A stretch of DNA of 64,000 nt, from positions 434,001-498,000 of the forward strand of contig MCFH01000003.1 of assembly GCA_002104945.1 (NCBI GenBank), read 5' to 3'. Shown one piece after another: positions 900 through 63,279 of the stretch (the first letter of the stretch is position 1; the number at the start of each line of letters is the position of its first letter). The position numbers and the translations under genes were made by a program. Under the pieces are notes generated by a model that saw nothing but the letters and a program-made list of their open reading frames with translations, was not told the origin of the DNA and did not search any database. This stretch comes from Piromyces finnis finn. Taxonomy: Eukaryota; Fungi; Neocallimastigomycota.

Positions 900-934
<35 letters not shown>

Positions 935-8220: not shown

Positions 8221-8252
<32 letters not shown>

Positions 8253-8489
8253 GGCATCAAATATTATAAACTTTATTATTAATTTAATTAAAATTATAAT
8301 ACATGTAATAAAAAATTAAAAAATAAAAATAAAAATAAAAAAAATATGTTTAAATAAACACAAATGAATAAAAATTGGGTATAATGTATTCTAGTAATTT
8401 TAATTAAAGTAAGAAAGCCACTATCATACTAAAGTATAATAATTGTATTTGACTTCCAATGGGACACCGAGCCAAAGACCAAAATTTTA

Positions 8490-13638: not shown

Positions 13639-13883
13639 CCAAGCATCCATTGCGCAATGCTTGGATTTAATTCTTTCTACTCTCTCAGTACCATGAGCAT
13701 GAGTAGACCCCCTTGAGAAACTACATTTATTAAATAAATGAAGGCACATTCCTAAGAGGGCACCAAGCATCCATTGCGCAATACTTGGATTTAATTCTTT
13801 CTACTCTCTCAGTACCATGAGCATGAGTAGACCCCCTTGAGAAACTACATTTATTAAATAAATGAAGGCACGTTCCCAAGAGG
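13639..13883 (-). repeat. Two tandem 124-bp units forming the 5' terminus of E3
   Basis: Units start ccaagcatccattgcgcaat at 13639 and 13763. The same pair is at 19436-19681 (E4) and 25213-26405 (E5, interrupted). A single unit is at 55250-55371 (E7) and a partial unit at 6353-6466 (E1). Confidence 0.9.
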
Positions 13884-17000: not shown

Positions 17001-19681
17001 ATTACATCTTTTGTGGATGTAATCAATGAGCTTACGGTAGATTTTAATTCTTTTAATAAATTCATCTATATCATAAATTCTTTCTTTTTTAAATCTCTTA
17101 TACAACTTCATTTTGATTTTTTGGAGATTAAAAATTTGTTGTGAAATATGAAATGAAGACTTTATAACATTATTTGCTGAGGTAATACTGAGCTCGTCTG
17201 CAATTGAAAAAGCAGTTGAAGTAAATTCTTTGGAAAGATCATCTGTAGAAACATTAGGATCGTTGAATTTTGCTGAAAGTATTTGGAATTTATTATGACT
17301 GAGAATAGATTCCTTTTCCTCAATACATTTTAATCTATTCCATTTCAGAATTTTCTTAGGAACGTTAAAGTCATTAGAAAAATCTTCCATAGGAATAATT
17401 TTACCATTAATAAGAAGTGGCTTATGGTCTGATACAGGATAAAAATTATTTATAAATGATCCTGAGTGAATAAGATCTTTCATCTTCGAATTGATAAGAG
17501 CATGGTCAATGTCGGAAGATTGATCACCTCGAGTCCAAGAGATAGTAGACCCTCTAAGCGGAAGAATTTCCCAATCTCCTAATCCATTAGTTGATAACCA
17601 GTTGGATAATTTTACTTTAGACATATTAAAATCACCAACAAGAATCGATGGATGGGATGAATGAGTTTGTAACCACAAGCGAACTTCTAACTTTGCATGA
17701 TCAACATAGATGTTGTGATGACTATGAGGCATATAAACATTTCCAATCGAGCATTTGAATCTATTCCAGAGACTAAAAGTATAAATAGAAATAATATACT
17801 TTCCAGAGAAGTTTTCAAGTGAGGCTTGACACGAATTGTGAAAACCTAAATATAAACCTCTCATTCCCGGAACTGATTCGTCAGCTTTCTTGAAAAAGTG
17901 TCTATAGTTTCGCAAAGTAACACGACAAGGATAATCTGTATTCGATCCAGAACCATTACCAGTTTCTTGGAAACATAAGAATAATGGTTTGAAAATAGCT
18001 GTGAAATAGCTAATACTATCTCTCTTTTCATGATTCCACCCATTGGTGTTCCAACTAAGACAAAAAGAAAAGTTATCAGGCTTGTTGGATGAGGAAGAAT
18101 CGTTGCTATTATTATTATTATTAAAGTCATCGTTATTAATGGATGATGCATCAGAGGAATAAGTAGAACTATTACTAGATGGCTGTGAAACTGAAGAACT
18201 ATCAACTATTGAACTGTTATCAGAGTTGATAGAACTATTAGAATTAATTGTTGAATGTTGAGATTGAAATTGTGTTTGCTGTAGATCTGGAATATTTTCA
18301 TGATGGGAAACTTGTTGAAGATCCTGTTGAAGATCTGTTGAAGATCGGATTGTTGATGAGATTGTTGAACTGATTGTTGAACTGATTGTTGAAATGATTG
18401 TTGAATAGAATGTTGATGTTTATTAGAAACTAAAATTTTACGTTTGAGAGTGGAAAAAGTGTATTTGTGATTCCTTCTACTACGAGCTGAAAAGGAAATT
18501 GAGGTAACTGAAAGTTTCTTCTTTAACATGTGTAAGATTTTAATACAATCTTTTGATGAACCATGAACCTTGACTAAGAAAAAGTGATCATTGAAAGTTT
18601 GAAAATATTTAACACTAATAACTGAATTAAATTTATCTTCTAGAATAACCTCGAGTTTTTCCCATAGCATATTTACTGACCATGATCGAATACCACGGAT
18701 AAAGAAGGAGCGAATATCATCTAAGGGGATACCATAAGACCGGGTACCACGTCTGATATAATTCTTATCTTTAATATAAAGGACTGACATGATAATAAAT
18801 TCTAATTAAAAAATATTGAATATAAAATAAATACTAATAAAAATTACAAATATAACGTATATGGAAAAAAATCTGTCTCTCTCTCTCTTCTTAAAAGTAC
18901 TGGATAGTACAAAAATTGTTACGATGCTTTGTTTAAAGTTTCTTTTTTTTGAATTCTAGTTGTAAATTTTCTTTAAAAATTCTAGTTTTGGTTTGTTGTT
19001 AGTAAATTCGATTCGCTTTTTGACACTAAACTTGTTTGACTTTACTTTTCATTAAATATTTAAATTGGTAAAAAATTTGAATCAAGAATGTCGACACCAG
19101 AAAGCTTGTGAATAGTATTTTTACATGATGTAGAGTGAATCAGTCTCTTACAAGAAACAATACAACAATAGCTACATGAATATAAAAGTACAATGCAAAT
19201 GCTAAAGTTGACTACATTGGATTCTTACAAGAGAAGAGTAGTACTACATGAATACATGAATAAAAGAAAAAATACAGCAACAAAATGTATTACTCTTCTA
19301 ATTAAATACTATACAAACTTACCTGAAAAATCAAACATTCACTTATTCATCAAATACTTAAATTTGATGAATAAAATGTTTTTTAATCGCTCAGTACCAT
19401 GAGCTTAGTCCTAATAATTTTCCCTTGAAGACTAACCAAGCATCCATTGCGCAATGCTTGGATTTAATTCTTTCTACTCTCTCAGTACCATGAGCATGAG
19501 TAGACCCCCTTGAGAAATTACATTTATTAAATAAATGAAGGCACATTCCTAAGAGGGCACCAAGCATCCATTGCGCAATACTTGGATTTAATTCTTTCTA
19601 CTCTCTCAGTACCATGAGCATGAGTAGACCCCCTTGAGAAACTACATTTATTAAATAAATGAAGGCACGTTCCCAAGAGGG
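14003..19681 (-). mobile_element. Copy E4, full length, one frameshift in the QQDL-repeat linker
   Basis: Poly(T) 14003-14025. ORF split into 18206-18790 and 14265-17915 by a 1-nt loss near 18330-18345. 5' end ttcccaagaggg at 19681. Confidence 0.95.
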
Positions 19682-19733
19682 ATACATTATTAAATAATTA
19701 TTTAAATGGCACGTTCCCAAGAGGGTTAATTAT

Positions 19734-19735
<2 letters not shown>

Positions 19736-19819
<84 letters not shown>

Positions 19820-22800
19820 GGCATCAAATATTTTAAACTTTATTATTAATTTAATTAAAATTATAATACATGTAATAAAAATTAAAATAATAAAAATAAA
19901 AAAAATATGTTTAAATAAACACAAATGAATAAAAATTGGGTATAATGTATTCTAGTAATTTTAATTAAAGTAAGAAAGCCACTATCATACTAAAGTATAA
20001 TAATTGTATTTGACTTCCAATGGGACACCGAGCCAAAGATCAAAATTTTGTCATGGAACAAAATTATGATCTCCATTGGTTGCGCTGGCCCTCCTGGCCT
20101 GTCTTACTGTTTCTTCAGCATTGACGCTCTTGGATGTTGCTTCAAACCTTTTGAACATTGACCATTGCTGGCCAATAGCAAAAGGCATGATTTTGGTTAG
20201 AAGTTCCGCGGTTACCGTCAAGAATGGTGTCCTTCATTAGTACCAGATTGAATCTGACGCTTACAAAGTTCTTTCCATTCCCTTGAATTGTAATTGATAT
20301 TGTTAAAACTTCTTCCCCCAAGAAGGAATTTAAATATTTTACTGCACACACTAGAATAATCATACACATTAATATTCACCGGATTATTAGAACTATTACT
20401 ATCATTAACTAAATTACTATCTAAATTAGAATTATTATCTTCACTATTGCTATCATTACTAATATTATTATTTCTATTATTGTTATTATTACTATTGTTA
20501 CTATTACTATTGTTACTATTACTATTGTTATTACTACTATTGTTACTATTACTATTAATGTTATTACTATCTCTACTGATATTATCAATTTCATTATTAT
20601 TGATAGGACTATTGGAATTACGTTGACTGAAAAAATTTAATAGCTGGACTATGGAATCATAATGTTTAATACGGATATCTCTAAATGTTGGACAATCTAA
20701 TAACCAATGTTTAATACTTTGATCTCCACACTTGCAACATGGACAGTAGTTAGGACAAACTGGATCAACAAATTTGGCAGCTTTGGCAACTCTAGCATCC
20801 AACTTGTATCCGCTTCTTGCTTTCAATAGCCAGTAGAAGCCATAGGCAAACTCTGGGTACTCATAACATAATTTAATAAAATCTTTAGTTTCAATAAATT
20901 TATTATCATCATAATATTGCGCTTTGATTGAATTCCCTTTGAGATCTTTCCAATAAAAGTTTTTAACTGCTTTAACATCTCCATGTTTCTTTAATTTTTT
21001 ATCAAGTGTCCTACTTGATTTGCACCACGTGTATTTTCTAAATTTAGGAATGTAATTGACAAGGTGTGAGATAATACAATTTGAGTTTTTCCATTTGTTA
21101 AAACATCTAACCTGAGCTAACGCACATTTGGCTGACAATGGAGGAATATTCAAATCTTTTGAGATAGAGTATAAAGATATAAACGATACAGCTTTATGAA
21201 CTCCGGCAACCCATCGTATTCCTTTGTTAACATGCTTCTGAGCAATCCTAGACCTAGCTTTGTTGGATCCAAGTAATGGTGCAAAGTATGAAACTCTGCT
21301 AATCACTTGTGAGTTAAGTACTAGTTTTTTGAAAGGAATAGGAATATTAGGATTTCTTAAGAATTTACTGACTGAGAAAAGTCCTTTCAAAACCTTGTTA
21401 TTAAGAGCTTTAATTACTGGTTTAAGGGACAGATTCTTATCAAATGGAACACCAAGATAAGTATACAATCAGTAGTTGGAATGGGTTGTCCTGCTAAGTA
21501 AAATGTTGGATCTCTCTTGTTCTGATTTTCTATTGATTCAGGACGAATCACCATCGTTGAACATTTCTGGATACCAAATTCCATTTCATTATACAGGCCC
21601 ATTCATTAACTCTTCTAAGCATCTTTTTTAAGCATCCTCTTGTTGGAGCACAAATAACTATATCATCTGCAAAAAGTCCACCACAGCATCGAGTGTCACC
21701 TAAACTGACTCCTAGATCTTCGCACTCTCTAAATATATCATTAATAAAGAGATTAAAGAGAATAGGAGAAAGAGGGCAACCTTGACGGACTCCTTTCTTC
21801 ACATCAAAAGATTTCGAGAATTGTCCATCTAATTTGACATTAGCCTTAGATGTTAAATATAAATTTTTGATAAATTGTAAACTCTTACCTCGGATTCCTA
21901 AACAATCTAATTTATGGAGAATATTACCGATTGGGACTGAATCGTATGCTTTCCTGAGATCTAAAAAGGCCAAATATGTCTCTTTATTATCTAATTGACG
22001 TCTACGGCATATTTCTTGGATTGAAATGAAAAGACTGATACTTTCTTCCTTTTTTCGAAAACCAAATTGTTCAGGTCTAATGAAATTATTCTTTAGACCA
22101 TATTCTGAGATTCTAGTGGTGACAATTTTGGAAATCAACTTAATACCATTATTGATAAGTGATATACCTCGATAGTTATCACAATCTGTCAAATCTCCCT
22201 TCTTAGGAATAGAAACAATACTGGATTCATTCCATGAGTTGGGGAAATCTCCATCCCAAATACGGTTGAATAATTTAAGAATAAAATTTAAACCATGAGC
22301 ATCATTATCTGAAGTAGTATTACCAGAAGAATTATTATCTGTAGCATTATTAGAATCATTACTTGATGGAATTAATGCTTTGTAAAATTCAATTGGAATA
22401 CCATCCGGACCTGATGCTTTATAATTTGGAGTAGAGAGGATAGCTGACTTGACTTCATCAATACTAATATCTTGGTTGATATCCCACTCATCAAGCATAG
22501 GAAGTGAAAAACGTTTATTCGTTGGTTCTTCATACCAATGCTCCAAATCAAGACTTACACCACTTGGATCTGATGCAAGATTTTCGAAATGATCATGCCA
22601 CACATCTAGTTGTTCTTCCGTAGCAACAACTAATTCTCCATTTTTTTTTTAATTGGTTGAGCAATAAAGAAAGAATCTTTTCCAATTTTTGCAGTTTTTT
22701 GATCCATTTCCAGGCCTTCTTAGGATTATGACTCTTCATATACTCACATCCTGTTTTAATCCAATGAAGATATTCTTGCTTCCTAAATTCATTACATCTT

Positions 22801-25402
22801 TTGTGGATGTAATCAATGAGCTTACGGTAGATTTTAATTCTTTTAATAAATTCATCTATATCATAAATTCTTTCTTTTTTAAATCTCTTATACAACTTCA
22901 TTTTGATTTTTTGGAGATTAAAAATTTGTTGTGAAATATGAAATGAAGACTTTATAACATTATTTGCTGAGGTAATACTGAGCTCGTCTGCAATTGAAAA
23001 AGCAGTTGAAGTAAATTCTTTGGAAAGTTCATCTGTAGAAACATTAGGATCGTTGAATTTTGCTGAAAGTATTTGGAATTTATTATGACTGAGAATAGAT
23101 TCCTTTTCCTCATACATTTTAATCTATTCCATTTCAGAATTTTCTTAGGAACGTTAAAGTCATTAGAAAAATCTTCCATAGGAATAATTTTACCATTAAT
23201 AAGAAGTGGCTTATGGTCTGATACAGGATAAAAATTATTTATAAATGATCCTGAGTGAATAAGATCTTTCATCTTCGAATTGATAAGAGCATGGTCAATG
23301 TCGGAAGATTGATCACCTCGAGTCCAAGAGATAGTAGACCCTCTAAGCGGAAGAATTTCCCAATCTCCTAATCCATTAGTTGATAACCAGTTGGATAATT
23401 TTACTTTAGACATATTAAAATCACCAACAAGAATCGATGGATGGGATGAATGAGTTTGTAACCACAAGCGAACTTCTAACTTTGCATGATCAACATAGAT
23501 GTTGTGATGACTATGAGGCATATAAACATTTCCAATCGAGCATTTGAATCTATTCCAGAGACTAAAAGTATAAATAGAAATAATATACTTTCCAGAGAAG
23601 TTTTCAAGTGAGGCTTGACACGAATTGTGAAAACCTAAATATAAACCTCTCATTCCCGGAACTGATTCGTCAGCTTTCTTGAAAAAGTGTCTATAGTTTC
23701 GCAAAGTAACACGACAAGGATAATCTGTATTCGAACCAGAACCATTACCAGTTTCTTGGAAACATAAGAATAATGGTTTGAAAATAGCTGTGAAATAGCT
23801 AATACTATCCTCTTTTCATGATTCCACCCATTGGTGTTCCAACTAAGACAAAAAGAAAAGTTATCAGGCTTGTTGGATGAGGAAGAATCGTTGCTATTAT
23901 TATTATTATTAAAGTCATCGTTATTAATGGATGATGCATCAGAGGAATAAGTAGAACTATTACTAGATGGCTGTGAAACTGAAGAACTATCAACTATTGA
24001 ACTGTTATCAGAGTTGATAGAACTATTAGAATTAATTGTTGAATGTTGAGATTGAAATTGTGTTTGCTGTAGATCTGGAATATTTTCATGATGGGAAACT
24101 TGTTGAAGATCCTGTTGAAGATCTTGTTGAAGATCGGATTGTTGATGAGATTGTTGAACTGATTGTTGAAATGATTGTTGAATAGAATGTTGATGTTTAT
24201 TAGAAACTAAAATTTTACGTTTGAGAGTGGAAAAAGTGTATTTGTGATTCCTTCTACTACGAGCTGAAAAGGAAATTGAGGTAACTGAAAGTTTCTTCTT
24301 TAACATGTGTAAGATTTTAATACAATCTTTTGATGAACCATGAACCTTGACTAAGAAAAAGTGATCATTGAAAGTTTGAAAATATTTAACACTAATAACT
24401 GAATTAAATTTATCTTCTAGAATAACCTCGAGTTTTTCCCATAGCATATTTACTGACCATGATCGAATACCACGGATAAAGAAGGAGCGAATATCATCTA
24501 AGGGGATACCATAAGACCGGGTACCACGTCTGATATAATTCTTATCTTTAATATAAAGGACTGACATGATAATAAATTCTAATTAAAAAATATTGAATAT
24601 AAAATAAATACTAATAAAAATTACAAATATAACGTATATGGAAAAAAATCTGTCTCTCTCTCTCTTCTTAAAAGTACTGGATAGTACAAAAATTGTTACG
24701 ATGCTTTGTTTAAAGTTTCTTTTTTTTGAATTCTAGTTGTAAATTTTCTTTAAAAATTCTAGTTTTGGTTTGTTGTTAGTAAATTCGATTCGCTTTTTGA
24801 CACTAAACTTGTTTGACTTTACTTTTCATTAAATATTTAAATTGGTAAAAAATTTGAATCAAGAATGTCGACACCAGAAAGCTTGTGAATAGTATTTTTA
24901 CATGATGTAGAGTGAATCAGTCTCTTACAAGAAACAATACAACAATAGCTACATGAATATAAAAGTACAATGCAAATGCTAAAGTTGACTACATTGGATT
25001 CTTACAAGAGAAGAGTAGTACTACATGAATACATGAATAAAAGAAAAAATACAGCAACAAAATGTATTACTCTTCTAATTAAATACTATACAAACTTACC
25101 TGAAAAATCAAACATTCACTTATTCATCAAATACTTAAATTTGATGAATAAAATGTTTTTTAATCGCTCAGTACCATGAGCTTAGTCTTAATAATTTTCC
25201 CTTAAAGACTAACCAAGCATCCATTGCGCAATGCTTGGATTTAATTCTTTCTACTCTCTCAGTACCATGAGCATGAGTAGACCCCCTTGAGAAATTACAT
25301 TTATTAAATAAATGAAGGCACATTCCTAAGAGGGCACCAAGCATCCATTGCGCAATACTTGGATTTAATTCTTTCTACTCTCTCAGTACCATGAGCATGA
25401 GT

Positions 25403-25451
<49 letters not shown>

Positions 25452-26405
25452 GGCATCAAATATTTTAAACTTTATTATTAATTTAATTAAAATTATAATA
25501 CATGTAATAAAAAATTAAAAAATAAAAATAAAAATAAAAAAAAATATGTTTAAATAAACACAAATGAATAAAAATTGGGTATAATGTATTCTAGTAATTT
25601 TAATTAAAGTAAGAAAGCCACTATCATACTAAAGTATAATAATTGTATTTGATTTCCAATGGGACACCGAGCCAAAGATCAAAATTTTGTCATGGAACAA
25701 AATTATGATCTCCATTGGTTGCGCTGGCCCTCCTGGCCTGTCTTACTGTTTCTTCAGCATTGACGCTCTTGGATGTTGCTTCAAACCTTTTGAACATTGT
25801 CCATTGCTGGCCAATAGCAAAAGGCATGATTTTGGTTAGAAGTTCCGCGGTTACCGTCAAGAATGGTGTTCCTTCGTTAGTATCAGATTGAATCTGACGC
25901 TTACAAAGTTCTTTCCATTCCCTTGAATTGTAATTAATATTGTTAAAACTTCTTCCCCCAAGAAGGAATTTAAATATTTTACTGTACACACTAGAATAAT
26001 CATACACATTAATATTCACCGGATTATTAGAACTATTACTATCATTAACTAAATTACTATCTAAATTAGAATTATTATCTTCACTATTGCTATCATTACT
26101 AATATTATTATTTCTATTATTGTTATTATTACTATTGTTACTATTACTATTGTTACTATTACTATTGTTATTACTACTATTGTTACTATTACTATTAATG
26201 TTATTACTATCTCTACTGATATTATCAATTTCATTATTATTGATAGGACTATTGGAATTACGTTGACTGAAAAAATTTAATAGCTGAACTATGGAATCAT
26301 AATGTTTAATACGGATATCTCTAAATGTTGGACAATCTAAAGCATGAGTAGACCCCCTTGAGAAACTACATTTATTAAATAAATGAAGGCACGTTCCCAA
26401 GAGGG
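19736..26405 (-). mobile_element. Copy E5, full length with about 7 short deletions in the ORF; its 5' repeat is interrupted by E6
   Basis: 81-nt poly(T) 19736-19816, ORF fragments spanning about 20052-24567, 5'UTR to 25405, and terminal part at 26341-26405. Confidence 0.93.
25406..26340 (-). mobile_element. Copy E6, 0.93-kb 5'-truncated, nested in the outer 5' repeat of E5
   Basis: Poly(T) 25406-25448. Perfect 12-bp TSD agcatgagtaga at 25394-25405 and 26341-26352. Confidence 0.95.

Positions 26406-48467: not shown

Positions 48468-48470
<3 letters not shown>
48459..48470. repeat. TSD of the E7/E8 cluster (tattttattgtt)
   Basis: Same 12-mer at 55373-55384, just after the E7 5' end. It is AT-rich and overlaps the poly(T), so the boundaries are soft. 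Confidence 0.7.
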
Positions 48471-48505
<35 letters not shown>

Positions 48506-51500
48506 GGCATCAAATATTTTAAACTTTATTATTAATTTAATTAAAATTATAATACATGTAATAAAAAATTAAAAAATAAAAATAAAAATAAAAAAAATAT
48601 GTTTAAATAAACACAAATGAATAAAAATTGGGTATAATGTATTCTAGTAATTTTAATTAAAGTAAGAAAGCCACTATCATACTAAAGTATAATAATTGTA
48701 TTTGACTTCCAATGGGACACCGAGCCAAAGATCAAAATTTTGTCATGGAACAAAATTATGATCTCCATTGGTTGCGCTGGCCCTCCTGGCCTGTCTTACT
48801 GTTTCTTCAGCATTGACGCTCTTGGATGTTGCTTCAAACCTTTTGAACATTGACCATTGCTGGCCAATAGCAAAAGGCATGATTTTGGTTAGAAGTTCCG
48901 CGGTTACCGTCAAGAATGGTGTTCCTTCGTTAGTACCAGATTGAATCTGACGCTTACAAAGTTCTTTCCATTCCCTTGAATTGTAATTAATATTGTTAAA
49001 ACTTCTTCCCCCAAGAAGGAATTTAAATATTTTACTGCACACACTAGAATAATCATACACATTAATATTCACCGGATTATTAGAACTATTACTATCATTA
49101 ACTAAATTACTATCTAAATTAGAATTATTATCTTCACTATTGCTATCATTACTAGTATTATTATTTCTATAACTACTATTGTTATTATTACTATTTCTAT
49201 TATTACTATTGTTACTATTACTATTGTTACTATTACTATTGTAATTATTATTACTACTATTGTTACTATTACTATTAATGTTATTGCTATCTCTACTGAT
49301 ATTAACATTTTCATTATTATTGATAGGACTATTGGAATTACGTTGACTGAAAAAATTTAGTAGCTGGACTATGGAAACATAATATTTAATACGGATATCT
49401 CTAAATGTTGGACAATCTAATAACCAATGTTTAATACTTTGATCTCCACACTTGCAACATGGACAGTAGTTAGGACAAACTGGATCAACAAATTTAGCAG
49501 CTTTGGCAACTCTAGCATCTAACTTGTATCCGCTTCTTGCTTTCAATAGCCAGTAGAAGCCATAGGCAAACTCTGGGTATTCATAACATAATTTAATAAA
49601 ATCTTTAGTTTCACTAAATTTATTATCATCATAATATTGCGCTTTGATTGAATTCCCTTTGAGATCTTTCCAATAAAAGTTTTTAATTGCTTTAACATCT
49701 CCATGTTTCTTTAGTTTTTTATCAAGTGTCCTACTTGATTTGCACCACGTGTATTTTCTAAATTTAGGAATGTAATTGACAAGGTGTGAGATAATACAAT
49801 TTGAGTTTTTCCATTTGTTAAAACATCTAACCTGAGCTAACGCACATTTGGCTGACAATGGAGGAATATTCAAATCTTTTGAAATAGAGTATAAAGATAT
49901 AAACGATACAGCTTTATGAACTCCGGCAATCCATCGTATTCCTTTGTTAACATGCTTCTGTGCAATCCTAGACCTAGCTTTGTTGGATCCAAGTAATGGT
50001 GCAAAGTATGAAACTCTGCTAATCACTTGTGAGTTAAGTACTAGCTTTTTGAAAGGAATAGGAATATTAGGATTTCTTAAGAATTTACTGACTGAGAAAA
50101 GCCCTTTCAAAACCTTGTTATTAAGAGCTTTAATTACTGGTTTAAGGGACAAATTCTTATCAAATGGAACACCAAGATAAGTATAACAATCAGTAGTTGG
50201 AATGGGTTGTCCTGCTAAGTAAAATGTTGGATCTCTCTTGTTCTGATTTTCTATTGATTCAGGACGAATCACCATCGTTGAACATTTCTGGATACCAAAT
50301 TCCATTTCATTATACAATGCCCATTCATTAACTCTTCTAAGCATCTTTTTTAAGCATCCTCTTGTTGGAGCACAAATAACTATATCATCTGCAAAAAGTC
50401 CACCACAGCATCGAGTGTCACCTAAACTGACTCCTAGATCTTCGCACTCTTTAAATATATCATTAATAAAGAGATTAAAGAGAATAGGAGAAAGAGGGCA
50501 ACCTTGACGGACTCCTTTCTTCACATCAAAAGATTTCGAGAATTGTCCATCTAATTTGACATTAGCCTTAGATGTTAAATATAAATTTTTGATAAATTGT
50601 AAACTCTTACCTCGGATTCCTAAACAATCTAATTTATGGAGAATATTACCGATTGGGACTGAATCGTATGCTTTCCTGAGATCTAAAAAGGCCAAATATG
50701 TCTCTTTATTATCTAATTGACGTCTACGGCATATTTCTTGGATTGAAATGAAAAGACTGATACTTTCTTCCTTATTTCGAAAACCAAATTGTTCAGGTCT
50801 AATGAAATTATTCTTTAAACCATATTCTGAGATTCTAGTGGTGACAATTTTGGAAATCAACTTAATACCATTATTGATAAGTGATATACCTCGATAGTTA
50901 TCACAATCTGTCAAATCTCCCTTCTTAGGAATAGAAACAATACTGGATTCATTCCATGAGTTGGGGAAGTCTCCATCCCAAATACGGTTGAATAATTTAA
51001 GAATAAAATTTAAACCATGAGCATCATTATCTGAAGTGGTATTACCGGAAGAATTATTACCTGTAGCATTATTAGAATCATTACTTGATGGAATTAATGC
51101 TTTGTAAAATTCAATTGGAATACCATCCGGACCTGATGCTTTATAATTTGGAGTAGAGAGGATAGCTGACTTGACTTCATCAATACTAATATCTTGGTTG
51201 ATATCCCATTCATCAAGCATAGGAAGTGAAAAACGTTTATTCGTTGGTTCTTCATACCAATGCTCCAAATCAAGACTTACACCACTTGGATCTGATGCAA
51301 GGTTTTCGAAATGATCATGCCACACTTCAAGTTGTTCTTCTGTAGCAACAACTAATTCTCCATTTTTATTTTTAGTTGGTTGAGCAATAAAGAAAGAATC
51401 TTTTCCAATTTTTGCAGTTTTCTTGATCCATTTCCAGGCCTTCTTAGGATTATGACTCTTCATATACTCATATCCTGTTTTAATCCAATGAAGATATTCT

Positions 51501-53912
51501 TGCTTCCTAAATTCATTACATCTTTTGTGGATGTAATCAATGAGCTTACGGTAGATTTTAATTCTTTTAATAAATTCATCTATATCATAAATTCTTTCTT
51601 TTTTAAATCTCTTATACAACTTCATTTTGATTTTTTGAAGATTAAAAATTTATTGTGAAATATGAAATGAAGACTTTATAACATTATTAGCTGAGGTAAT
51701 ACTGAGCTCGTCTGCAATTGAAAAAGCAGTTGAAGTAAACTCTTTGGAAAGTTCATCTGTAGAAACATTAGGATCGTTGAATTTTGCTGAAAGAATTTGG
51801 AATTTATTATGACTGAGAATAGATTCTTTTTCCTCAATACATTTTAATCTATTCCATTTCAGAATTTTCTTAGGAACATTAAAGTCATTAGAAAAATCTT
51901 CCATAGGAATAATTTTACCATTAATAAGAAGTGGCTTATGGTCTGATACAGGATAAAAATTATTTATAAATGATCCTGAGTGAATAAGATCTTTCATCTT
52001 CGAATTGATAAGAGCATGGTCAATGTCGGAAGATTGATCACCTCGAGTCCAAGAGATAGTAGACCCTCTAAGCGGAAGAATTTCCCAATCTCCTAATCCA
52101 TTAGTTGATAACCAGTTGGATAATTTTACTTTAGACATATTAAAATCACCAACAAGAATCGATGGATGGGATGAATGAGTTTGTAACCACAAGCGAACTT
52201 CTAACTTTGCATGATCAACATAGATGTTGTGATGACTATGAGACATATAAACATTTCCAATCGAGCATTTGAATCTATTCCAGAGACTAAAAGTATAAAT
52301 AGAAATAATATACTTTCCAGAGAAGTTTTCAAGTGAGGCTTGACACGAATTGTGAAAACCTAAATATAAACCTCTCATTCCAGGAACTGATTCGTCAGCT
52401 TTCTTGAAAAAGTGTCTATAGTTTCGCAAAGTAACACGACAAGGATAATCTGTATTCGATCCAGAACCATTACCAGTTTCTTGGAAACATAAAAATAATG
52501 GTTTGAAAATAGCTGTGAAATAGCTAATACTATCTCTCTTTTCATGATTCCACCCATTGGTGTTCCAACTAAGACAAAAAGAAAAGTTATCAGGCTTGTT
52601 GGATGAGGAAGAATCGTTGCTATTATTATTATTATCAAGGTCATCATTATTAATGGATGATGCATCAGAGGAATAAGTAGAACTATTACTAGATGGCTGT
52701 GAAACTGAAGAACTATCAACTATTGAACTGTTATCAGAGTTGATAGAGCTATTAGAATTAATTGTTGAATGTTGAGATTGAAATTGTGTTTGCTGTAGAT
52801 CTGGAATATTTTCATGATGGGAAACTTGTTGAAGATCCTGTTGAAGATCTTGTTGAAGATCGGATTGTTGATGAGATTGTTGAACTGATTGTTGAAGTGA
52901 TTGTTGAATTGAAAGTTGATGTTTATTAGAAACTAAAATTTTACGTTTGAGTGTGGAAAAAGTGTATTTGTGATTCCTTCTACTACGAGCTGAAAAGGAA
53001 ATTGAGGTAACTGAAAGTTTCTTCTTTAACATGTGTAAGATTTTAATACAATCTTTTGATGAACCATGAACCTTGACTAAGAAAAAGTGATCATTGAAAG
53101 TCTGAAAATATTTAACACTAATAACTGAATTAAATTTATCTTCTAGAATAACCTCGAGTTTTTCCCATAGCATATTTACTGACCATGATCGAATACCACG
53201 GATAAAGAAGGAGCGAATATCATCTAAGGGGATACCATAAGACCGGGTACCACGTCTGATATAATTCTTATCTTTAATATAAAGGACTGACATGATAATA
53301 AATTCTAATTAAAAAATATTGAATATAAAATAAATACTAATAAAAATTATAAATATAACGTATATGGAAAAAAATCTGTCTCTCTCTCTCTTCTTAAAAG
53401 TACTGGATAGTACAAAAATTGTTACGATGCTTTGTTTAAAGTTTCTTTTTTTTTTTTTTTTTTGAATTCTAGTTGTTAACTTTTTTTAAAAATTCTAGTT
53501 TTGGTTTGTTGTTAGTAAATTCGAATCGCTTTTTGACACTAAACTTGTTTGACTTTACTTATCATTAAATATTTAAATTTGTAAAAATTTGAATCAAGAA
53601 TGTCGACACCAGAAAGCTTGTGAATAGTATTTTTACATGATGTAGAGTGAATCAGTCTCTTACAAGAAACAATACAACAATAGCTACATAAATATAAAAA
53701 TACAATGCAAATGCTAAAGTTGACTACATTGGATTCTTACAAGAGAAGAGTAGTACTACAAGAATACATGAATAAAAGAAAAAATACAGCAACAAAATGT
53801 ATTACTCTTCTAATTAAATACTATACAAACTTACCTGAGTATCAAACATTCAACTTATTCATCAAATACTTAAATTCGATGGATAAATGTTTTTTAATCG
53901 CTCAGTACCATG

Positions 53913-53952
<40 letters not shown>

Positions 53953-55371
53953 GGCATCAAATATTTTAACCTTTATTATTAATTTAATTAAAATTATAAT
54001 ACATGTAATATAAAAAATAAAAATAAAAATAAAAATAAAAAAAAAAATGTTTAAATAAACACAAATGAATAAAAATTGGGTATAATGTATTCTAGTAATT
54101 TTAATTAAAGTAAGAAAGCCACTATCATACTAAAGTATAATAATTGTATTTGACTTCCAATGGGACACCGAGCCAAAGATCAAAATTTTGTCATGGAACA
54201 AAATTATGATCTCCATTGGTTGCGCTGGCCCTCCTGGCCTGTCTTACTGTTTCTTCAGCATTGACGCTCTTGGATGTTGCTTCAAACCTTTTGAACATTG
54301 ACCATTGCTGGCCAATAGCAAAAGGCATGATTTTGGTTAGAAGTTCCGCGGTTACCGTCAAGAATGGTGTTCCTTCGTTAGTATCAGATTGAATCTGACG
54401 CTTACAAAGTTCTTTCCATTCCCTTGAATTGTAATTAATATTGTTAAAACTTCTTCCCCCAAGAAGGAATTTAAATATTTTACTGCACACACTAGAATAA
54501 TCATACACATTAATATTCACCGGATTATTAGAACTATTACTATCATTAACTAAATTACTATCTAAATTAGAATTATTATCTTCACTATTGCTATCATTAC
54601 TAATATTATTATTTCTATTATTGTTATTATTACTATTGTTACTATTACTATTGTTACTATTACTATTGTTATTACTACTATTGTTACTATTACTATTAAT
54701 GTTATTACTATCTCTACTGATATTATCAATTTCATTATTATTGATAGGACTATTGGAATTACGTTGACTGAAAAAATTTAATAGCTGGACTATAGAATCA
54801 TAATGTTTAATACGGATATCTCTAAATGTTGGACAATCTAATAACCAATGTTTAATACTTTGATCTCCACACTTGCAACATGGACAGTAGTTAGGACAAA
54901 CTGGATCAACAAATTTGGCAGCTTTGGCAACTCTAGCATCCAACTTGTATCCGCTTCTTGCTTTCAATAGCCAGTAGAAGCCATAGGCAAACTCTGGGTA
55001 CTCATAACATAATTTAATAAAATCTTTAGTTTCACTAAATTTATTATCATCATAATATTGCGCTTTGATTGAATTCCCTTTGAGATCTTTCCAATAAAAG
55101 TTTTTAATTGCTTTAACATCTCCATACTTCTTTAGTTTTTTTTCAAGTGTCCTACTTGATTTGCACCACGTGTATTTTCTCGGATTCCTAAACAATCTAA
55201 TTTATGAGTACCATGAGCTTAGTCCTAATAATTTTCCCTTAAAGACTAACCAAGCATCCATTGCGCAATACTTGGATTTAATTCTTCCTACTCTCTCAGT
55301 ACCATGAGCATGAGTAGACCCCCTTGAGAAACTACATTTATTAAATAAATGAAGGCACGTTCCCAAGAGGG
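48469..55371 (-). mobile_element. Copy E7, full length with one nonsense mutation and a single 5' repeat unit; 5'UTR interrupted by E8
   Basis: Poly(T) 48469-48502. ORF 48743-53293 is split by CAA>TAA at 51650-51652. 5'UTR runs to 53915 and resumes at 55207-55371. Confidence 0.95.
53916..55206 (-). mobile_element. Copy E8, 5'-truncated, nested in the E7 5'UTR, lacking 853 nt bounded by GT-AG splice sites
   Basis: Poly(T) 53916-53949. TSD agtaccatgagctt at 53904-53917 and 55207-55220. The junction at about 55178-55179 joins positions equivalent to E1 3025 and 2171. Confidence 0.93.
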
Positions 55372-56571: not shown

Positions 56572-59500
56572 TTAATCAAGGTTTTCCATAATATTCTTCA
56601 AATATTTGGAAGAATCCTTAATCATAAACCAGTGATTACCTCTCATCTTAATATGTTGGGTAAATTCACTGAATTCATCACTAACTTCCTTTTTCCATAA
56701 GGAAGTATTATTATCATCAATAATCTTGTCTTGTTTACCAGAGAACATTAATAATTTGGAACGAATCTTCATATCATTTTCATTAGTAATAGAATCGATC
56801 ATAGCATATTCATTCTTGATTACTGGTAAAAGGTATTCATTATCACCAGTAAATTCAACTTGACATTCAGTCTTTTCAAGGTAAGAAGCAATTTGTTCTG
56901 GTGAATATTTAGCCATAACTTCACCGTTAAATTCAATTGGTCGTTTAACCGATGGAGCTAAGGCTCTGGAAATAATCAAGGTGGAAATAATTGGAACATC
57001 CTTATCTTCATCTTCATAGATTTGAATTTGAAGAAGTGTCTTCCAAGCTAATAAGGCACCAAATCCATTACCAATAAAGTGAATGGCATTGCAATCCTTG
57101 AATTTTTCAGATTCATCAGATTTAATAATAGCTTTAGTAACATTCTTAACTAATAAATCCCAATCAGTAACAAGTGGCTCATCCTTTCTAACACCGTAAC
57201 CTGGAAGATTAACAGTGAAGAGTAAGGAATCTTCCATATCTTCAACATATTCAGCATAGTCAATTTCACCTTCATCAGCAGATGGGAAGAAAATAAAGAC
57301 ATTTAATGGATCTTCAATACCTTCACAACCTTCAACTGGAACAATCCATTGATTAACTTCATCATCAGAAATAAGCTTGGCAGCTTCTTCCTTTGCTTTT
57401 TGTTCTTCAATCTTCTTTGCATTCTTTTCTTCTTCAGAAATAACTGGAGTCTTAGCATCGGCTTCTTCTTTCTTTTCATTAACCATTTTACTCTTAACAT
57501 ATTCTACAAGACGGTAAAGGCAAATGTTTTGAGTGGAGAAAACAACTAATGGAATGTTGATACCAGTGGCAGTTCTCATAATAGTACGTAATTCCATCAT
57601 CATGATAGAGTCAATACCTAATTCAGTTAAAGATTGGTATGGATCAATTTCATCATTTTCACCGTATTGGAGAACATTCTTTAATTCATGTTCCATAATT
57701 TCATAGATATTATCTTCTGAAATTTCCTTCTTTGAATTGGATTCAGTAACTTTTTGGGTAGTGGTAGTATCTTCTCTAATGTAGTTTTGATCGTTGGCAG
57801 TCTTGAAATCAAGCTTTGGACGGTTGGCTGGACGAACTGAACGGTAGATTGGATCGCAAATGTTATGATCAAAAACATTTTCCCATTGGACGATTGGAGT
57901 ACCGAAAACAACTGGAGCAATATCACCTGGGTGACTAATTAAGTTGGAAACTAAATTAATACTGTTGTATTCGTTAAATTGGAAGGTATTATCTAAAATC
58001 TTTGAGGTAAGACCGGATGGCCATACAGCTAATTGTAAAGTGATAATATCCTTTCTTCCGTGACTACGGTAGTAGTGAGCAATTTTATTAACAAACATAT
58101 TGGCAACACAATAGTTAATTTGACCACGATTACCAAAGAAGGAAGTCATAGAAGAAAAGAGAAGAATAAATTCCAAGTTCATACCTTCAGTAATCTTAGC
58201 GATACAGTGAGAACCTTCAATCTTACTGTTAATTAATTTGGCGAAACGTTCATAGGATTGGTTGAAAATTAAACCATCATCATTAACACCAGCAGTGTGA
58301 ATAATACCAGTTAATTTACTACCACTAGCCTTAATACCACTAATAACCTCTTTCATTTCAGTTTGAGAACCAACATTAACAGTAATATAGGTAACCTTAA
58401 TAGCCTTATTAACTTCACGAATGGAGGATAATTTAGCAGCAACCTTTTCATCAGTTTCTGGTCTACGACCAGTAAGAACAAGACCCTTAAGGTTTGGTTG
58501 TTTCATAAGGAAACGAGAGATATCGTAACCAACACCACCAAGACCACCAGTAATTAAAATAGTACCAGTGTAGTTGTGTTCACTTTCACCAGCAAAGTTA
58601 ACAGCTGGTGATTTGAAATTCTTAATTCTTCCTTCATAACGCTTACCGTTCTTATCATAAATAACTTCGAATGAAACGTTGTAACGATCAACACTTGACA
58701 TAACTTCTGTGTATATACGTGAAGAAATGTCTTCCTTGGAAGCATTGCGATCATTATCTAAATCAAAGACACGAATATCCATATATTCTTTCCAGAAACT
58801 CTTTGAGATACCACTAACAATACCTTGTAAGAGATCAATTTCACCCTTCCAATAATCAGTAGCATTCTTAGTAACATAACAGAAAGATTTCTTACAATCG
58901 TAAACATCAATAATTTGAGTGAAATTTTGAATGAAGACTAAGTTATTTTCGTAGGTAGATCTTAAAATATCATTAAAAGCAGTGCTGCTTGGATCAATAG
59001 ATGAAGCTTCTTGAACTTCTAATCCCATAGCCATAAAGTTGACAACAGCAATAGTTTCTTCTTCCATACCAGATTCCTTAATACCTAATTCCTTAAGATT
59101 TTGTTGAATGAGTTCCTTTGAACATTCATCCTTAGTTGGCATATTGATTTTGACGTGGCGGAAATCGGAAACCTTACTCTTCATGTATTTTACAAATGTA
59201 TCAGCATAACCCTTGTTATCAGCAAGAATGTAAAAGAATGGTGTCTTGGTAATTTCTTTTGGTGGGGTTGGAATTTCCTTAAAGTCAATAGTGTAGAGTT
59301 CAAATTCTGGATCAGTTTCTTTAGTCTTCATCTTAACTCTACGAGTTTGGAAAGCACCGCAATATTGACAAATATTACCATCTAAATCGTAAACAGAAAA
59401 GGATGTGAAAGCTGCATTTGGTTCAGTTCCTTCCATGTGCTTGTGAATAACGTAACAGTCATCTGGAATTGGTTTGTACTTGATAAGATTTTCAAATGAA

Positions 59501-62500
59501 GATGGAAGGAATGGATCACCCATATTTTCTTTTTTAATAGCTACAAGGGTATCCTTACCAGCATCACTATGAAGAGCAGCATCAAAGAGGTAGACTTGAG
59601 AAAGTCCAGAGTTGATGTTATTAATAGTTCTATCCTTAGAGTCAAGTCTTGAAACTAAAACAGTAGAACCTTCGTCATTAGTACCAACAGCAAATTCCTT
59701 AACAGATGGGAAACCACCACCGTAAAGACTACTTTCACGAATACTATCGTAAAGAATATCAGATGAATGAGTGTTTTCTTTAGTCATAATCTTTTCAATT
59801 AAGGCCTTAACTTCATCTGGCTTTGGAAGAGTGTCAAAAAGATCAGCATTTTCACCTTCCTTTAAGAGAAGTGCAGAAGCATTTAACATATGATTTTCAA
59901 TACCACCGTCAACTTTAGCATAAACGGCAATACGATCACCCTTCTTCTTCATAAGGAAATCAACATTAGAATCAGCCTTAATATTTAATGGACTACGAAT
60001 TAACATTTCATCACAGATTTCAATAATATCATCTTCATAGTTATTGATAGCCTTCATAGCAGTGTAAATGAATTCAGTGTAGGCAGCAGCTGGAATACAA
60101 CCATAACCTGTGATAACATGGTTCTTGAATAAGTATTCAACGTATTGTGGTGTTAATGGAGCAGCGACAATAAGTTCGCTTTCGTTGTTACTGATAATAG
60201 TAACAGATTTGTAAAGATCCCAGTTGGCCTTGTTAGAACCACCATCAATTGGTTGAGCACATTGTTCAGCAGTTTCTAACCAGTAACGAGATCTTTGGAA
60301 TGGATAAAGTGGAAGATCATAGAGACTATGTGGAATAACCTTACCAGAAGTTGGGTCAATACGTTGATGGAAGACATTCCAATCAATGTTACCACCAATC
60401 ATATAGAATTTACAAAGTGCATTAAATAAGTATTGTTCACTGTTTTGATCAGCAACACTACTAGCAATGAAGGTTGGACCAGTACCACGAAGTGATTCGG
60501 TTTCACGAACGAAACGAGAGCTCATGTTAGTTAAGGTAGCGGCTGGACCAACTTCAATAACAGCTAATAACTTCTTTTCGGATTCAATCATGGATTTAAC
60601 ACCATCAACGAAACGAACAGCATTTCTAGCATGCTTACCCCAATAGTCTTCTTCAAGACGAGAGCCAACTGGTTTAATGTTACCATCGACATTAGAAATA
60701 AATTTAACCTTCAAGTCTTGTCTGAATTTGGAGTCATCCTTTCTTTCAATCCATTTATTTAATTCGCTAACAGCTGGATCCATTAATGGTGAATGGAAAG
60801 CATCAGTAACATTTAATTTTTTGGTCTTAATGTTCATTTGACTAAAGTATTCGGTGATATCGTCAACTTCATCTTCATAACCAGAGATAACAGTGTGAGT
60901 AACACCATTAATAGCAGCAACAGAAACTTCTTCATCATATCCAAATTCTTCAATTGCTTCCTTAATGACATCTTCCTTTTCAAATACACTAACCATAGTA
61001 CCTGGTTTTTCACCATATTCACCCATGCATCTAGCTCTTTCAATAATGAAATCAATAGCTAAATCAATATCCATAGCACCAGTAGAAGCAGCAGCAACAA
61101 TTTCCCCTAAACTGTGACCATTGACAATAGTTGGGTTAATACCCCATGATTTCCAAAGCATACACATAGCATATTCGTAAGCAAATAAAGCTGGCTGAGC
61201 AATTTGTGCCTTGTTTAAGTGATGACTTTGACTTGGATTGTAAAGAGCGTCAATAAGAGAAATACCGGTAGCCTTTTTAACAACAACATCACACTTGTTA
61301 AGAGCATCACGGAAAACTGGTTGAGTTCTGTATAATTCTAAACCAACACCTGATTTAATACTACCTTGACCGGTGAAAGACATACCAACTTCAGTTTTAT
61401 CTGAACGAGCATTCTTTTTATTTTGATTAACATATTCGTTTAATTCAGCAGCTAATTCAGCAGCATTTCTTCCAATAACAGCATATCTGTACTTCATATG
61501 TTGACGACAGACATTAGAAGTATAACAAATATCAGCAATTGGAGCATTACTATCAAGGGATTCTAAAAGCTCAATGTATTGCTTAGCAACAGCAATTAAA
61601 GCAGCATTGCTCTTACCACTGATTGTAAGAACATGGTAGGTATCATTAATTGGGTAAACTTCTTTGGTTTCTGGTTCAATGTATTCTTCCACAATAACAT
61701 CGCTGACACTACCAGAAAGACCGTATGAAGAAATTAAAGCAGTACGTTTCTTTCCTTCAGCTGGTTTCCATTCTTCCTTTTGAGTTGGAATGTGTAATGG
61801 AACAGAATCGAAATCAATTAAAGGACTTGGATTTTTGAAATGAAGATGAGGGGCAACAGTCTTGTTTTTCATAGCTAATAATACTTTAACAAGAGAAGCT
61901 AAACCACTAACTTCTTCAGTATGACCAATGTTAGTTTTAACACTAGCTAAAACTAATGGACGTTCCTTAGAGTGACTACCCTTAAAGACATTGTTGATAG
62001 CTTCTGCTTCAATACGATCACCTAATTTTGTACCTGTACCGTGACCTTCCATATAGTCAATGTCACTTGGATTAACACCAGCCTTTTTTAAAACTTGTTT
62101 ATGAATATTGGTTTGACCAATAACAGTTGGAGAACTCATAGAAGCTCTAGAACCACTTTGACCAACAGCAGCAGCATTAATTAAACCATAAATTTTGTTG
62201 TGATCACGAATAGCATCATCTTTTCTCTTTAAAATGATAGTGACACAACCTTCACCAGGAACATAACCATCAGCAGCTTCATCATAAGCAGCACATCTAC
62301 AGTTTCTTGAGACCATCTTTGCGACAGATAAAAGACTGAAACCGGAGCTCATGAATGGACAGTGAGCGGCATTAACAATAGCAAGATCAGTTTCACCAAG
62401 GTTTAAGTCCTTGACGGCATCATGAGTAGCAACTAAACCGGAAGAACAAGCAGTATCAACGGTGTGGGCAGCACCAAGTAAATTATACATGAAACTGATT

Positions 62501-63279
62501 CTACCAGGTAAAGAAGCAGCAGCACAACTATGCATACTCATACCATTAAGAACACTGAAGCCAGTATCAGAAGCAAGAATAGCATATCTATTCATTTCAT
62601 CGACTTGACCTGGAGCAGTGTATACACTAGTATTAGTTCCAGAAAGGACATCTGGATCAATACCTGCATCTTGGAAGGCTTCATAAGTAGTTTCTAAAAC
62701 CCAACGGAACTTTGGATCAAGAGCAGAGGCTTCATTTGGGTTCATGTTGAAGAACATTGGATCAAAGTCAGAAATTGGGGCAGCATCTGGGGTAGAATCA
62801 TAACGACCATAGTTGTAAATATAATGTTCTCCTGGCTTTAAGTTTTCTTCTTTAGACATGTAGTGGTGAAGGTGACGATTTGTACCAATTGGTGAGATAC
62901 AGAATCTACCATCAACTAAGCTATTCCAGTATTTGTCAACAGTATTTATACCTCCTGGAAGTCTTAACGCAATACCAACAACAGCAATTTGAACTTGATT
63001 TTGGTATTCTGGATTAACACTTGGTTTTTGAACCATTTGATTCATTGTCATTAAAAGTTGACTAAGAAGTTCTAATGAAGATTGTTGGAAAAATGGGCTT
63101 AAGTCAATAGAAGTGGTAGGGGCAATACCAACAACTTGACAAAGTTGATTTTGGAAATCAGAAAAATCTTGGGCTTTTAAACCTAAGCTAACAACAGTTT
63201 CATTAGAAGCTTGAATATCTTTTAATTCCTTAAGATTTGGAACAAAGTTTTGTAATTGATTATAAATTATGCTAATCAT
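56572..63279 (-). CDS. Intronless type I polyketide synthase, 2235 aa: (ACP-like)-KS-AT-DH-KR-ACP-TE-like
   Basis: KS DTACSS, HGTGT, NIGH. AT GHSLG and AFHS. DH HVITGYGCIP and DAALH. KR TGGLGGVG, HTAGVNDD and Y...N. ACP LGIDS. C-terminal alpha/beta-hydrolase-like region with GNGFG and GNHW. No ER motif recognised. Confidence 0.93.
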   Translation of the reverse strand: MISIIYNQLQNFVPNLKELKDIQASNETVVSLGLKAQDFSDFQNQLCQVVGIAPTTSIDLSPFFQQSSLELLSQLLMTMNQMVQKPSVNPEYQNQVQIAVVGIALRLPGGINTVDKYWNSLVDGRFCISPIGTNRHLHHYMSKEENLKPGEHYIYNYGRYDSTPDAAPISDFDPMFFNMNPNEASALDPKFRWVLETTYEAFQDAGIDPDVLSGTNTSVYTAPGQVDEMNRYAILASDTGFSVLNGMSMHSCAAASLPGRISFMYNLLGAAHTVDTACSSGLVATHDAVKDLNLGETDLAIVNAAHCPFMSSGFSLLSVAKMVSRNCRCAAYDEAADGYVPGEGCVTIILKRKDDAIRDHNKIYGLINAAAVGQSGSRASMSSPTVIGQTNIHKQVLKKAGVNPSDIDYMEGHGTGTKLGDRIEAEAINNVFKGSHSKERPLVLASVKTNIGHTEEVSGLASLVKVLLAMKNKTVAPHLHFKNPSPLIDFDSVPLHIPTQKEEWKPAEGKKRTALISSYGLSGSVSDVIVEEYIEPETKEVYPINDTYHVLTISGKSNAALIAVAKQYIELLESLDSNAPIADICYTSNVCRQHMKYRYAVIGRNAAELAAELNEYVNQNKKNARSDKTEVGMSFTGQGSIKSGVGLELYRTQPVFRDALNKCDVVVKKATGISLIDALYNPSQSHHLNKAQIAQPALFAYEYAMCMLWKSWGINPTIVNGHSLGEIVAAASTGAMDIDLAIDFIIERARCMGEYGEKPGTMVSVFEKEDVIKEAIEEFGYDEEVSVAAINGVTHTVISGYEDEVDDITEYFSQMNIKTKKLNVTDAFHSPLMDPAVSELNKWIERKDDSKFRQDLKVKFISNVDGNIKPVGSRLEEDYWGKHARNAVRFVDGVKSMIESEKKLLAVIEVGPAATLTNMSSRFVRETESLRGTGPTFIASSVADQNSEQYLFNALCKFYMIGGNIDWNVFHQRIDPTSGKVIPHSLYDLPLYPFQRSRYWLETAEQCAQPIDGGSNKANWDLYKSVTIISNNESELIVAAPLTPQYVEYLFKNHVITGYGCIPAAAYTEFIYTAMKAINNYEDDIIEICDEMLIRSPLNIKADSNVDFLMKKKGDRIAVYAKVDGGIENHMLNASALLLKEGENADLFDTLPKPDEVKALIEKIMTKENTHSSDILYDSIRESSLYGGGFPSVKEFAVGTNDEGSTVLVSRLDSKDRTINNINSGLSQVYLFDAALHSDAGKDTLVAIKKENMGDPFLPSSFENLIKYKPIPDDCYVIHKHMEGTEPNAAFTSFSVYDLDGNICQYCGAFQTRRVKMKTKETDPEFELYTIDFKEIPTPPKEITKTPFFYILADNKGYADTFVKYMKSKVSDFRHVKINMPTKDECSKELIQQNLKELGIKESGMEEETIAVVNFMAMGLEVQEASSIDPSSTAFNDILRSTYENNLVFIQNFTQIIDVYDCKKSFCYVTKNATDYWKGEIDLLQGIVSGISKSFWKEYMDIRVFDLDNDRNASKEDISSRIYTEVMSSVDRYNVSFEVIYDKNGKRYEGRIKNFKSPAVNFAGESEHNYTGTILITGGLGGVGYDISRFLMKQPNLKGLVLTGRRPETDEKVAAKLSSIREVNKAIKVTYITVNVGSQTEMKEVISGIKASGSKLTGIIHTAGVNDDGLIFNQSYERFAKLINSKIEGSHCIAKITEGMNLEFILLFSSMTSFFGNRGQINYCVANMFVNKIAHYYRSHGRKDIITLQLAVWPSGLTSKILDNTFQFNEYNSINLVSNLISHPGDIAPVVFGTPIVQWENVFDHNICDPIYRSVRPANRPKLDFKTANDQNYIREDTTTTQKVTESNSKKEISEDNIYEIMEHELKNVLQYGENDEIDPYQSLTELGIDSIMMMELRTIMRTATGINIPLVVFSTQNICLYRLVEYVKSKMVNEKKEEADAKTPVISEEEKNAKKIEEQKAKEEAAKLISDDEVNQWIVPVEGCEGIEDPLNVFIFFPSADEGEIDYAEYVEDMEDSLLFTVNLPGYGVRKDEPLVTDWDLLVKNVTKAIIKSDESEKFKDCNAIHFIGNGFGALLAWKTLLQIQIYEDEDKDVPIISTLIISRALAPSVKRPIEFNGEVMAKYSPEQIASYLEKTECQVEFTGDNEYLLPVIKNEYAMIDSITNENDMKIRSKLLMFSGKQDKIIDDNNTSLWKKEVSDEFSEFTQHIKMRGNHWFMIKDSSKYLKNIMENLD

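Follow-up and report, generated by a model that had tools for sequence, protein, structure and literature searches.

Copies of a gut-fungal LINE that lack an exact GT-AG segment are probably retrocopies of spliced element RNA

Among described systems, those closest to the one considered here are the spliced integrated retrotransposed elements (SpIREs) of human L1, which are retrocopies of the RNA of a long interspersed nuclear element (LINE) spliced at cryptic GT-AG sites (Larson et al. 2018, PMC5860796). In SpIREs, one donor is joined to several acceptors (97/622, 97/790, and 97/976), and the resulting copies represent roughly 2% of the full-length human L1PA1-6 elements (PMC5860796). They are defective dead ends that are found in several subfamilies, some of them needing protein supplied in trans, and the spliced RNA has been shown by reverse-transcription PCR in human cells (PMC5860796). 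For fungi, no description of spliced LINE retrocopies was found in the literature searched, the coverage of which was incomplete. A comparable case is described here from a 64,000-nucleotide (nt) stretch of the genome of Piromyces finnis (contig MCFH01000003.1, positions 434,001 to 498,000 of the forward strand; C156:434001-498000), which is called the window throughout. It holds a LINE copy, E8, that lacks a segment of 853 nt with GT-AG ends, and three further copies, on contigs C151, C198, and C168, lack either the same segment or a shorter one that begins at the same nucleotide. As judged from their sequences, these four copies are probably retrocopies of spliced element RNA.

The intact reference copy of this element, E1, lies at positions 899-6467 on the minus strand of the window (5,569 nt), ends in poly(A), and contains a single, intact open reading frame (ORF) of 1512 amino acids (aa; 1169-5707), in which an apurinic-type endonuclease (APE) is located upstream of the reverse transcriptase (RT). 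E8 (53915-55206, minus strand) is a poly(A)-tailed, 5′-truncated retrocopy that is collinear with E1 3052-3025 and then with E1 2171-899. Its upstream "exon" piece (55179-55206) ends in GGAATCCGAG at the donor position, and all of its 28 nt match E1 3052-3025 and four other copies in the window. The downstream part (53950-55178) comprises the C-terminal region of the ORF, with a CCHC motif, an asparagine/serine-rich tract, and the 3′ untranslated region (3′ UTR), and is 99% identical to the best-matching intact copies in the genome. It is followed by a tail of 35 A (53915-53949). The whole is flanked by a 14-nt target-site duplication, AAGCTCATGGTACT, with its 5′ copy at 55207-55220 and its 3′ copy at 53903-53916, the first two A of the latter merging into the tail. 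E8 sits in the 5′ leader of E7, a full-length copy (48470-55363, minus strand) made up of 48470-53917 plus 55207-55363. Empty sites for the same target are present in four other copies in the window (6310-6323, 13596-13609, 19393-19406, and 25170-25183), on which the flanks of E8 overlap by 14 nt. Thus, the tail, the duplication, and the empty sites elsewhere identify E8 as a discrete insertion into the leader of E7.

In element sense, E8 reads CATAAATTAGATTGTTTAGGAATCCGAG/AAAATACACG, where the join between the donor exon end and the far-acceptor exon start, GAG/AAAATAC, falls between window positions 55179 and 55178. Intact E1 reads GGAATCCGAG/GTAAGAG at 3025/3024 and CCTAAATTTAG/AAAATAC at 2172/2171. 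E8 therefore lacks exactly the 853 nt from E1 3024 to 2172 (GTAAGAG...TTTAG). The join is exact to the base, both of its sides are collinear with E1 by BLAST, and the breakpoint is ambiguous by 2 nt (AG). The donor of the intact copies (3019-3031, minus strand) is CCGAG/GTAAGAG, with the exon end at 3025 and the intron start at 3024. An exact 17-mer spanning it occurs 369 times in the genome, which indicates a large family.

The genome-wide searches covered the 56,455,805-base assembly (232 contigs, the largest of 2,625,575 bases). An exhaustive pattern search finds the 853-nt junction at three loci on three contigs, namely E8, C151:115562, and C198:119682, which differ in all of their flanks and in their 5′ ends. 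The C151 copy is full length, with a complete 5′ leader and its own 13-nt target-site duplication, TATTGAATATCAT; the C198 copy is 5′-truncated at E1 4943 and has no clean ends. The C168 copy is very young and full length, with a 14-nt target-site duplication, TTAAAATATATCTT, and a long A tail. Starting from the same donor nucleotide, it lacks exactly 60 nt (corresponding to E1 2965-3024, minus strand), which read GTAAGAG...GGCTAATGTCAAATTAG (ending in ATTAG) and contain CTAAT at 2979-2975 in the arrangement CTAAT-N9-AG. These 60 nt are in frame and encode 20 RT residues. The ORFs of the C151 and C168 copies also contain breaks elsewhere. The C168 copy carries at its 5′ end a tandem duplication of the first ~115 nt of the element (L027 8844-8967), and a contig of sequencing run X2 contains a joint, 6467>6352, in the same arrangement.

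Other forms of these joins were also searched for. Five looser matches to the 853-nt junction, with 2-3 mismatches, on C180, C213, C178, C209, and C228, are all unrelated DNA, and no diverged copy of the 60-nt join was found in the genome beyond C168. Searches of the genome for the far acceptor joined to any other upstream sequence or donor gave no match, and a metagenome scan with a degenerate pattern for both joins gave 20 matches, none related to the element. Throughout the genome, GT comes next after the exon end TTAGGAATCCGAG in all copies but the 3 + 1 deletion copies and five point mutants. The latter (GAG/AT.., GAG/GA.., or GAG/GG..) are at C200:623424 (L024, ~3437), C1:2081528 (L026), C153:345270, C163:513732, and C177:114700, and are otherwise unspliced where readable. 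The donor is kept in at least 369 copies, and the spliced ones are thus ~1% of the family, that is, 4 of about 380 copies carrying the donor region. The acceptor AG is kept in 39/39 sampled non-junction copies, and its flanking sequence is unchanged in 36 of those 39.

The boundaries of the missing segments favor splice sites over chance. The sense strand of E1 contains 276 GT and 348 AG dinucleotides, and a random deletion, with three possible registers, would be of the GT-AG type in roughly 1% of cases. The heptamer AGGTAAG occurs only twice in this strand, and one of the two is the shared donor. The other lies in the 5′ leader, within a 341-nt stretch (5899-6239, minus strand) of the form CAG/GTAAGT...TACTAAC...CTAG/, which is present in all sampled copies that have a leader. 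The 60-nt segment fits the size and signals of a small fungal intron, and the branch A of its CTAAT would be 11 nt from the 3′ end; the CTRAY consensus used here is general knowledge and is not derived from this genome. The genes adjoining the LINE array are long uninterrupted ORFs, so host intron signals are not derivable from the host genes of the window.

Ordinary deletions in the family look different. Four other internal deletions were seen in the sampled copies, and they serve as a limited null sample for deletions not made by splicing: 530 nt with GCTC microhomology (L023, ~2521), 946 nt with TAGAT microhomology (L026, ~4046-4050), 1324 nt with a 1-nt filler (L039, ~587-589), and 449 nt with a 17-nt inverted filler (L045, ~986-1004). 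All are singletons, and in no register does any of them have GT-AG ends. An earlier note on this window, made from its sequence alone, had described the base-exact 853-nt GT-AG gap in E8 and had read E8 as an L1-SpIRE-like retrocopy of spliced RNA. The positions in E1 given above confirm the gap, and the interpretation gains support from the same junction in two more insertions, which do not form one clade with E8 (see below), and from the reuse of the donor. The note had proposed to look for independent copies with the same junction, and these are the copies on C151 and C198, which differ in flanks and 5′ ends. It had further held that a lack of spliced RNA reads and of other junction copies, together with random microhomology at the ends of other deletions, would point to a chance join. 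Other junction copies do exist; the remaining deletions are of the microhomology kind, but they are singletons.

The sequences removed are not intron-like in content. In E1, the RT domain (PF00078) spans aa 788-1043 with 123.6 bits, and the APE domain (PF03372) scores 31.2 bits (cut-off 24.5; domain scanned alone); there is also a weak zf-RVT match or CCHC motif. The closest solved relative of the RT is human L1 ORF2p (8SXT, E 1.3e-32), with R2 behind. These domains, the poly(A) 3′ end, the target-site duplications, and the frequent 5′ truncation make the element an APE-type retrotransposon without long terminal repeats, i.e., a LINE, with an L1-like RT. Both missing segments are in-frame parts of the 1512-aa ORF, with conserved RT residues that align to L1 ORF2p in the same comparison. 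The one absent from E8, C151, and C198 (E1 2172-3024, minus strand) encodes the RT core, including QGCPLSP, which is identical in L1, and FADD. The 20 residues of the 60-nt segment, GKSLQFIKNLYLTSKANVKL, align to L1 GMYLKIIRAIYDKPTANIIL. A retained spliceosomal or ancestral intron was considered and rejected, since both segments are coding and align to this conserved RT. Consequently, the splice sites would be cryptic ones inside an exon.

Removal of the longer segment also shifts the frame, as 853 = 3 x 284 + 1. In the frame of the ORF, E8 reads ...HKLDCLGIR-ENTRGANQVGHLKKN-stop, that is, 15 codons past the join. The earlier note was right about the two RT motifs in the excised part, about its length not being a multiple of three, and about the early stop; its count of about 16 codons was not. 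Its proposal that E8 was mobilized in trans follows from the loss of the RT core from the spliced RNA: as an RNA with the 853-nt splice is unable to encode this core, the RT would have to come from elsewhere.

Whether the junction copies have one origin or several is central to their interpretation, as a single deletion of any kind, once made, could have spread as a non-autonomous subfamily from a deleted master. A maximum-likelihood tree was built from 1.23 kb downstream of the join in 42 copies, comprising those of the window, the 29 genome copies that match E8 best, and other loci. In this tree, E8 falls within a young clade of intact copies (support 100/99), C198 groups with E1 and window copy 9453, and C151 groups with a copy on C2. 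Forcing the three junction copies into one clade costs 50.5 log-likelihood units and is rejected (approximately unbiased, AU, test, p = 0.0026). In addition, the segment is kept in 29/29 of the closest sampled relatives of E8 (about 98-99% identical), and the 150 nt of E8 next to the junction differ from those of C151 and C198 at 6-7 sites. A single deletion also leaves unexplained both the GT-AG ends and the 60-nt deletion from the same donor. In its favor, the full-length C151 copy could in principle be transcribed, and a clade of only C151 and C198 is not rejected. Nevertheless, if C198 did descend from such a master, the founding event would still resemble splicing. A single spread deletion is thus an unlikely account of the whole, and these comparisons indicate that the junction arose repeatedly and not from one deleted master, with at least two independent events demonstrated. 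Two or more origins are claimed and not three, because of the clade that is not rejected.

Taken alone, E8 would be ambiguous, since its 28-nt piece follows an AG microhomology and could stem from a template jump as reverse transcription was ending. More generally, recurrent RT template jumping or DNA slippage, guided by the AG microhomology and a long-range RNA helix, might mimic splicing. The far acceptor region, CACCTTGTCAATTACATTCCTAAATTTAG/ (2172-2200, minus strand), contains ATTCCTAAAT (2185-2176), which is complementary to the exon end GTTTAGGAAT (3039-3030) through nine Watson-Crick pairs and one G-U pair; CGAGGT is also able to pair with ACCTTG (2198-2193). Pairing of GUUUAGGAAU with AUUCCUAAAU would thus place a helix 4 nt before the far acceptor, with a predicted duplex energy of -17.6 kcal/mol, where other partners average -9.8. 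This helix seemed striking in the fold of the isolated 941 nt. In the whole element, however, it is not unique, and it is not even the best partner of the donor segment, ranking at about the top 5% (about 7/139 bins are equal or better). For this reason, little weight is given to the suggestion that the 10-bp complementarity might juxtapose the splice sites. It does not rescue template jumping either, as a jump across the base of the helix would delete both arms and the 5′ arm is fully kept in the copies.

Two other observations fit a jump: the family does make microhomology deletions, and E8 looks mosaic. Relative to the majority state of each column among 34 young copies, E8 differs at five positions in the first 144 columns past the join, at none in the next ~1,000, and at about five in the A/T-rich 3′ UTR. 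Its first ~150 nt past the join (55030-55178) are an E1-like mosaic of minor variants, and no genome copy shares the exact haplotype. This pattern suggests either a recombinant source or a template switch onto the spliced RNA of another sublineage, and it gives no link between E8 and the other copies with the junction. Gene conversion was rejected as a way for the deletion to have reached E8, given the mere 28 nt upstream of the join and a haplotype that matches neither of the other junction copies. Against template jumping, the microhomology at the join is 2 nt, compared with 4-5 nt in real jump-type deletions. Moreover, jumping leaves unexplained the second, 60-nt deletion, which has the same first nucleotide and ends in AG with a CTAAT 11 nt upstream, and the coincidence of the shared start with one of two AGGTAAG sites. 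Recurrent jumping or slippage is therefore quite improbable, and the ambiguity of E8 is lifted by the independent copies, their non-monophyly, the second acceptor, the rare donor heptamer, and the contrast with ordinary deletions.

If the element RNA is spliced, it may be asked whether splicing serves a function. The earlier note had suggested a truncated endonuclease/RNA-binding isoform or host attenuation, and no evidence obtained here supports either. It is very doubtful that the site is a used switch, in which the splicing of a measurable share of element RNA would yield an RT-less protein of N-terminal domain plus endonuclease, or would send the transcripts to decay as self- or host-imposed attenuation, with the 10-bp complementarity tuning the choice of acceptor. 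Regulated splicing for an isoform of ~910 aa with these two domains, or for the attenuation of retrotransposition, would agree with a donor kept in at least 369 copies and with a spliced frame that ends shortly past the join. Nevertheless, the donor lies, like both removed segments, in conserved sequence that codes for RT, so that the protein itself explains the conservation, and the spliced retrocopies are few and decayed, as exemplified by the broken ORFs of C151 and C168. Regulated functional splicing is thus hardly credible as an explanation. Lastly, a collapsed or chimeric long-read assembly, conceivable in a window that is a dense array of near-identical copies (positions 1-881 are 100% identical to 4196-5076), is a negligible concern, as the base-exact join occurs at three loci on three contigs with their own flanks and private substitutions, two of them with clean target-site duplications.

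Several observations weigh against splicing as the source of these copies. The 60-nt form is a single copy, and 853 nt is long for a fungal intron. No CTRAY motif is present within 60 nt of the far acceptor, and 57 other AG would have to be skipped to reach it. The C151 and C198 copies may share one origin, to judge from the p values for their clade (0.08 in the downstream region and 0.36 in the upstream 1.5 kb), although the upstream region is too conserved to tell whether they are independent. The mosaic of E8 shows template switching or recombination in its history. Finally, the sequencing runs covered were assembled (Logan) contigs, in which rare forms are dropped and the junction unitig in a 370-copy repeat is very short. 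No joint 3025>2171 or 3025>2964 was present in these contigs, which are insensitive to rare forms, and one metatranscriptome contig (2916-3109) crosses the donor unspliced. The nature of runs X1-X3 is uncertain, with word depths (10^3-10^4) that would suit multi-copy genomic DNA; run X5 is a metatranscriptome with a depth of 2-9. The absence of joints says little, given how such contigs treat rare forms and how short the junction unitig is.

Set against these points are the exact GT-AG bounds, the hallmarks of retrotransposition, the independent recurrence across sublineages, and the use of one donor with two acceptors, all of which are observed. Retrocopying of spliced RNA thus remains the probable origin of the four copies, with the deletion made at the RNA level by the spliceosome and the RT supplied in trans, two steps that we infer. 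In such a scheme, the host spliceosome would occasionally splice the sense RNA of this L1-like, single-ORF LINE at the cryptic GAG/GTAAGAG site (E1 3025/3024), joining the donor to either the far AG, 853 nt downstream, or the near AG, 60 nt downstream. The spliced, polyadenylated RNAs would then serve, on occasion, as templates for target-primed reverse transcription. The products would carry a poly(A) tail, target-site duplications, and variable 5′ truncation, and would lack exactly the spliced segment. As the RT core is lost and the frame shifted in the 853-nt splice, copying of this form would depend on RT from unspliced elements, and the resulting copies would be dead ends.

As for the surroundings, the window has a GC content of 27%, and its minus strand carries a head-to-tail array of this one LINE family, which fills several percent of the genome. 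Besides E1, the array includes E0 (1-881), E2 (6467-8220), and E3 (8221-13753), with more copies at 14003-19550, 19784-25327, and 25416-26340. In E3, E2, E1, and E0, the 5′ end, whether full length or truncated, directly touches the poly(A) tail of the next copy upstream, as expected if new insertions target A/T tracts, while the copies in 14003-26340 are spaced by 90-250 nt. A neighbor of the array, also on the minus strand, is an uninterrupted ORF of 2235 aa (56572-63279).

These observations suggest that neither the conflict between spliceosome and LINE nor the retrotransposition of spliced LINE RNA is confined to mammalian L1. Both would also take place in an anaerobic, early-diverging gut fungus, whose genome is very AT-rich, and here the splice excises the catalytic core of the RT. 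In that case, the copies would be natural evidence that this LINE mobilizes RT-less RNA in trans, and they point to a cryptic splice site with probable activity in vivo. In annotation, the "clean" internal deletion of ~1% of copies is no reason to set up a separate non-autonomous family. Otherwise, the practical consequences are modest.

By analogy, the copies can be regarded as a fungal counterpart of human L1 SpIREs. As in SpIREs, one donor is used with several acceptors, the insertions have normal hallmarks, the copies are spread over subfamilies and defective, and their share is similar (~2% in human, ~1% here). In contrast, the human splices remove the 5′ UTR, or the 5′ UTR and ORF1, whereas the fungal element has a single ORF with the donor inside its RT domain, the catalytic core of which is lost through the 853-nt splice. 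The host is also an early-diverging anaerobic fungus, and the evidence from it consists of genomic copies. Processed pseudogenes offer a second parallel, in that spliced, polyadenylated RNA that encodes no working RT is copied in trans, with poly(A), target-site duplications, and 5′ truncation. In this case, however, the template would be the LINE's own transcript, and the "intron" is coding sequence that is kept in about 99% of copies. Internally deleted, non-autonomous LINE derivatives likewise lack the RT region and yet have been retrotransposed, but they form one lineage from one deleted master, while the copies described here are polyphyletic and have splice signals as their boundaries. 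At the level of the protein, the RT of human L1 ORF2p (PDB 8SXT, 8C8J, and 8UW3) is the best solved relative, with an identical QGCPLSP. Nevertheless, the fungal element has one ORF of 1512 aa that combines an N-terminal domain, APE, and RT, whereas L1 has ORF1 plus ORF2.

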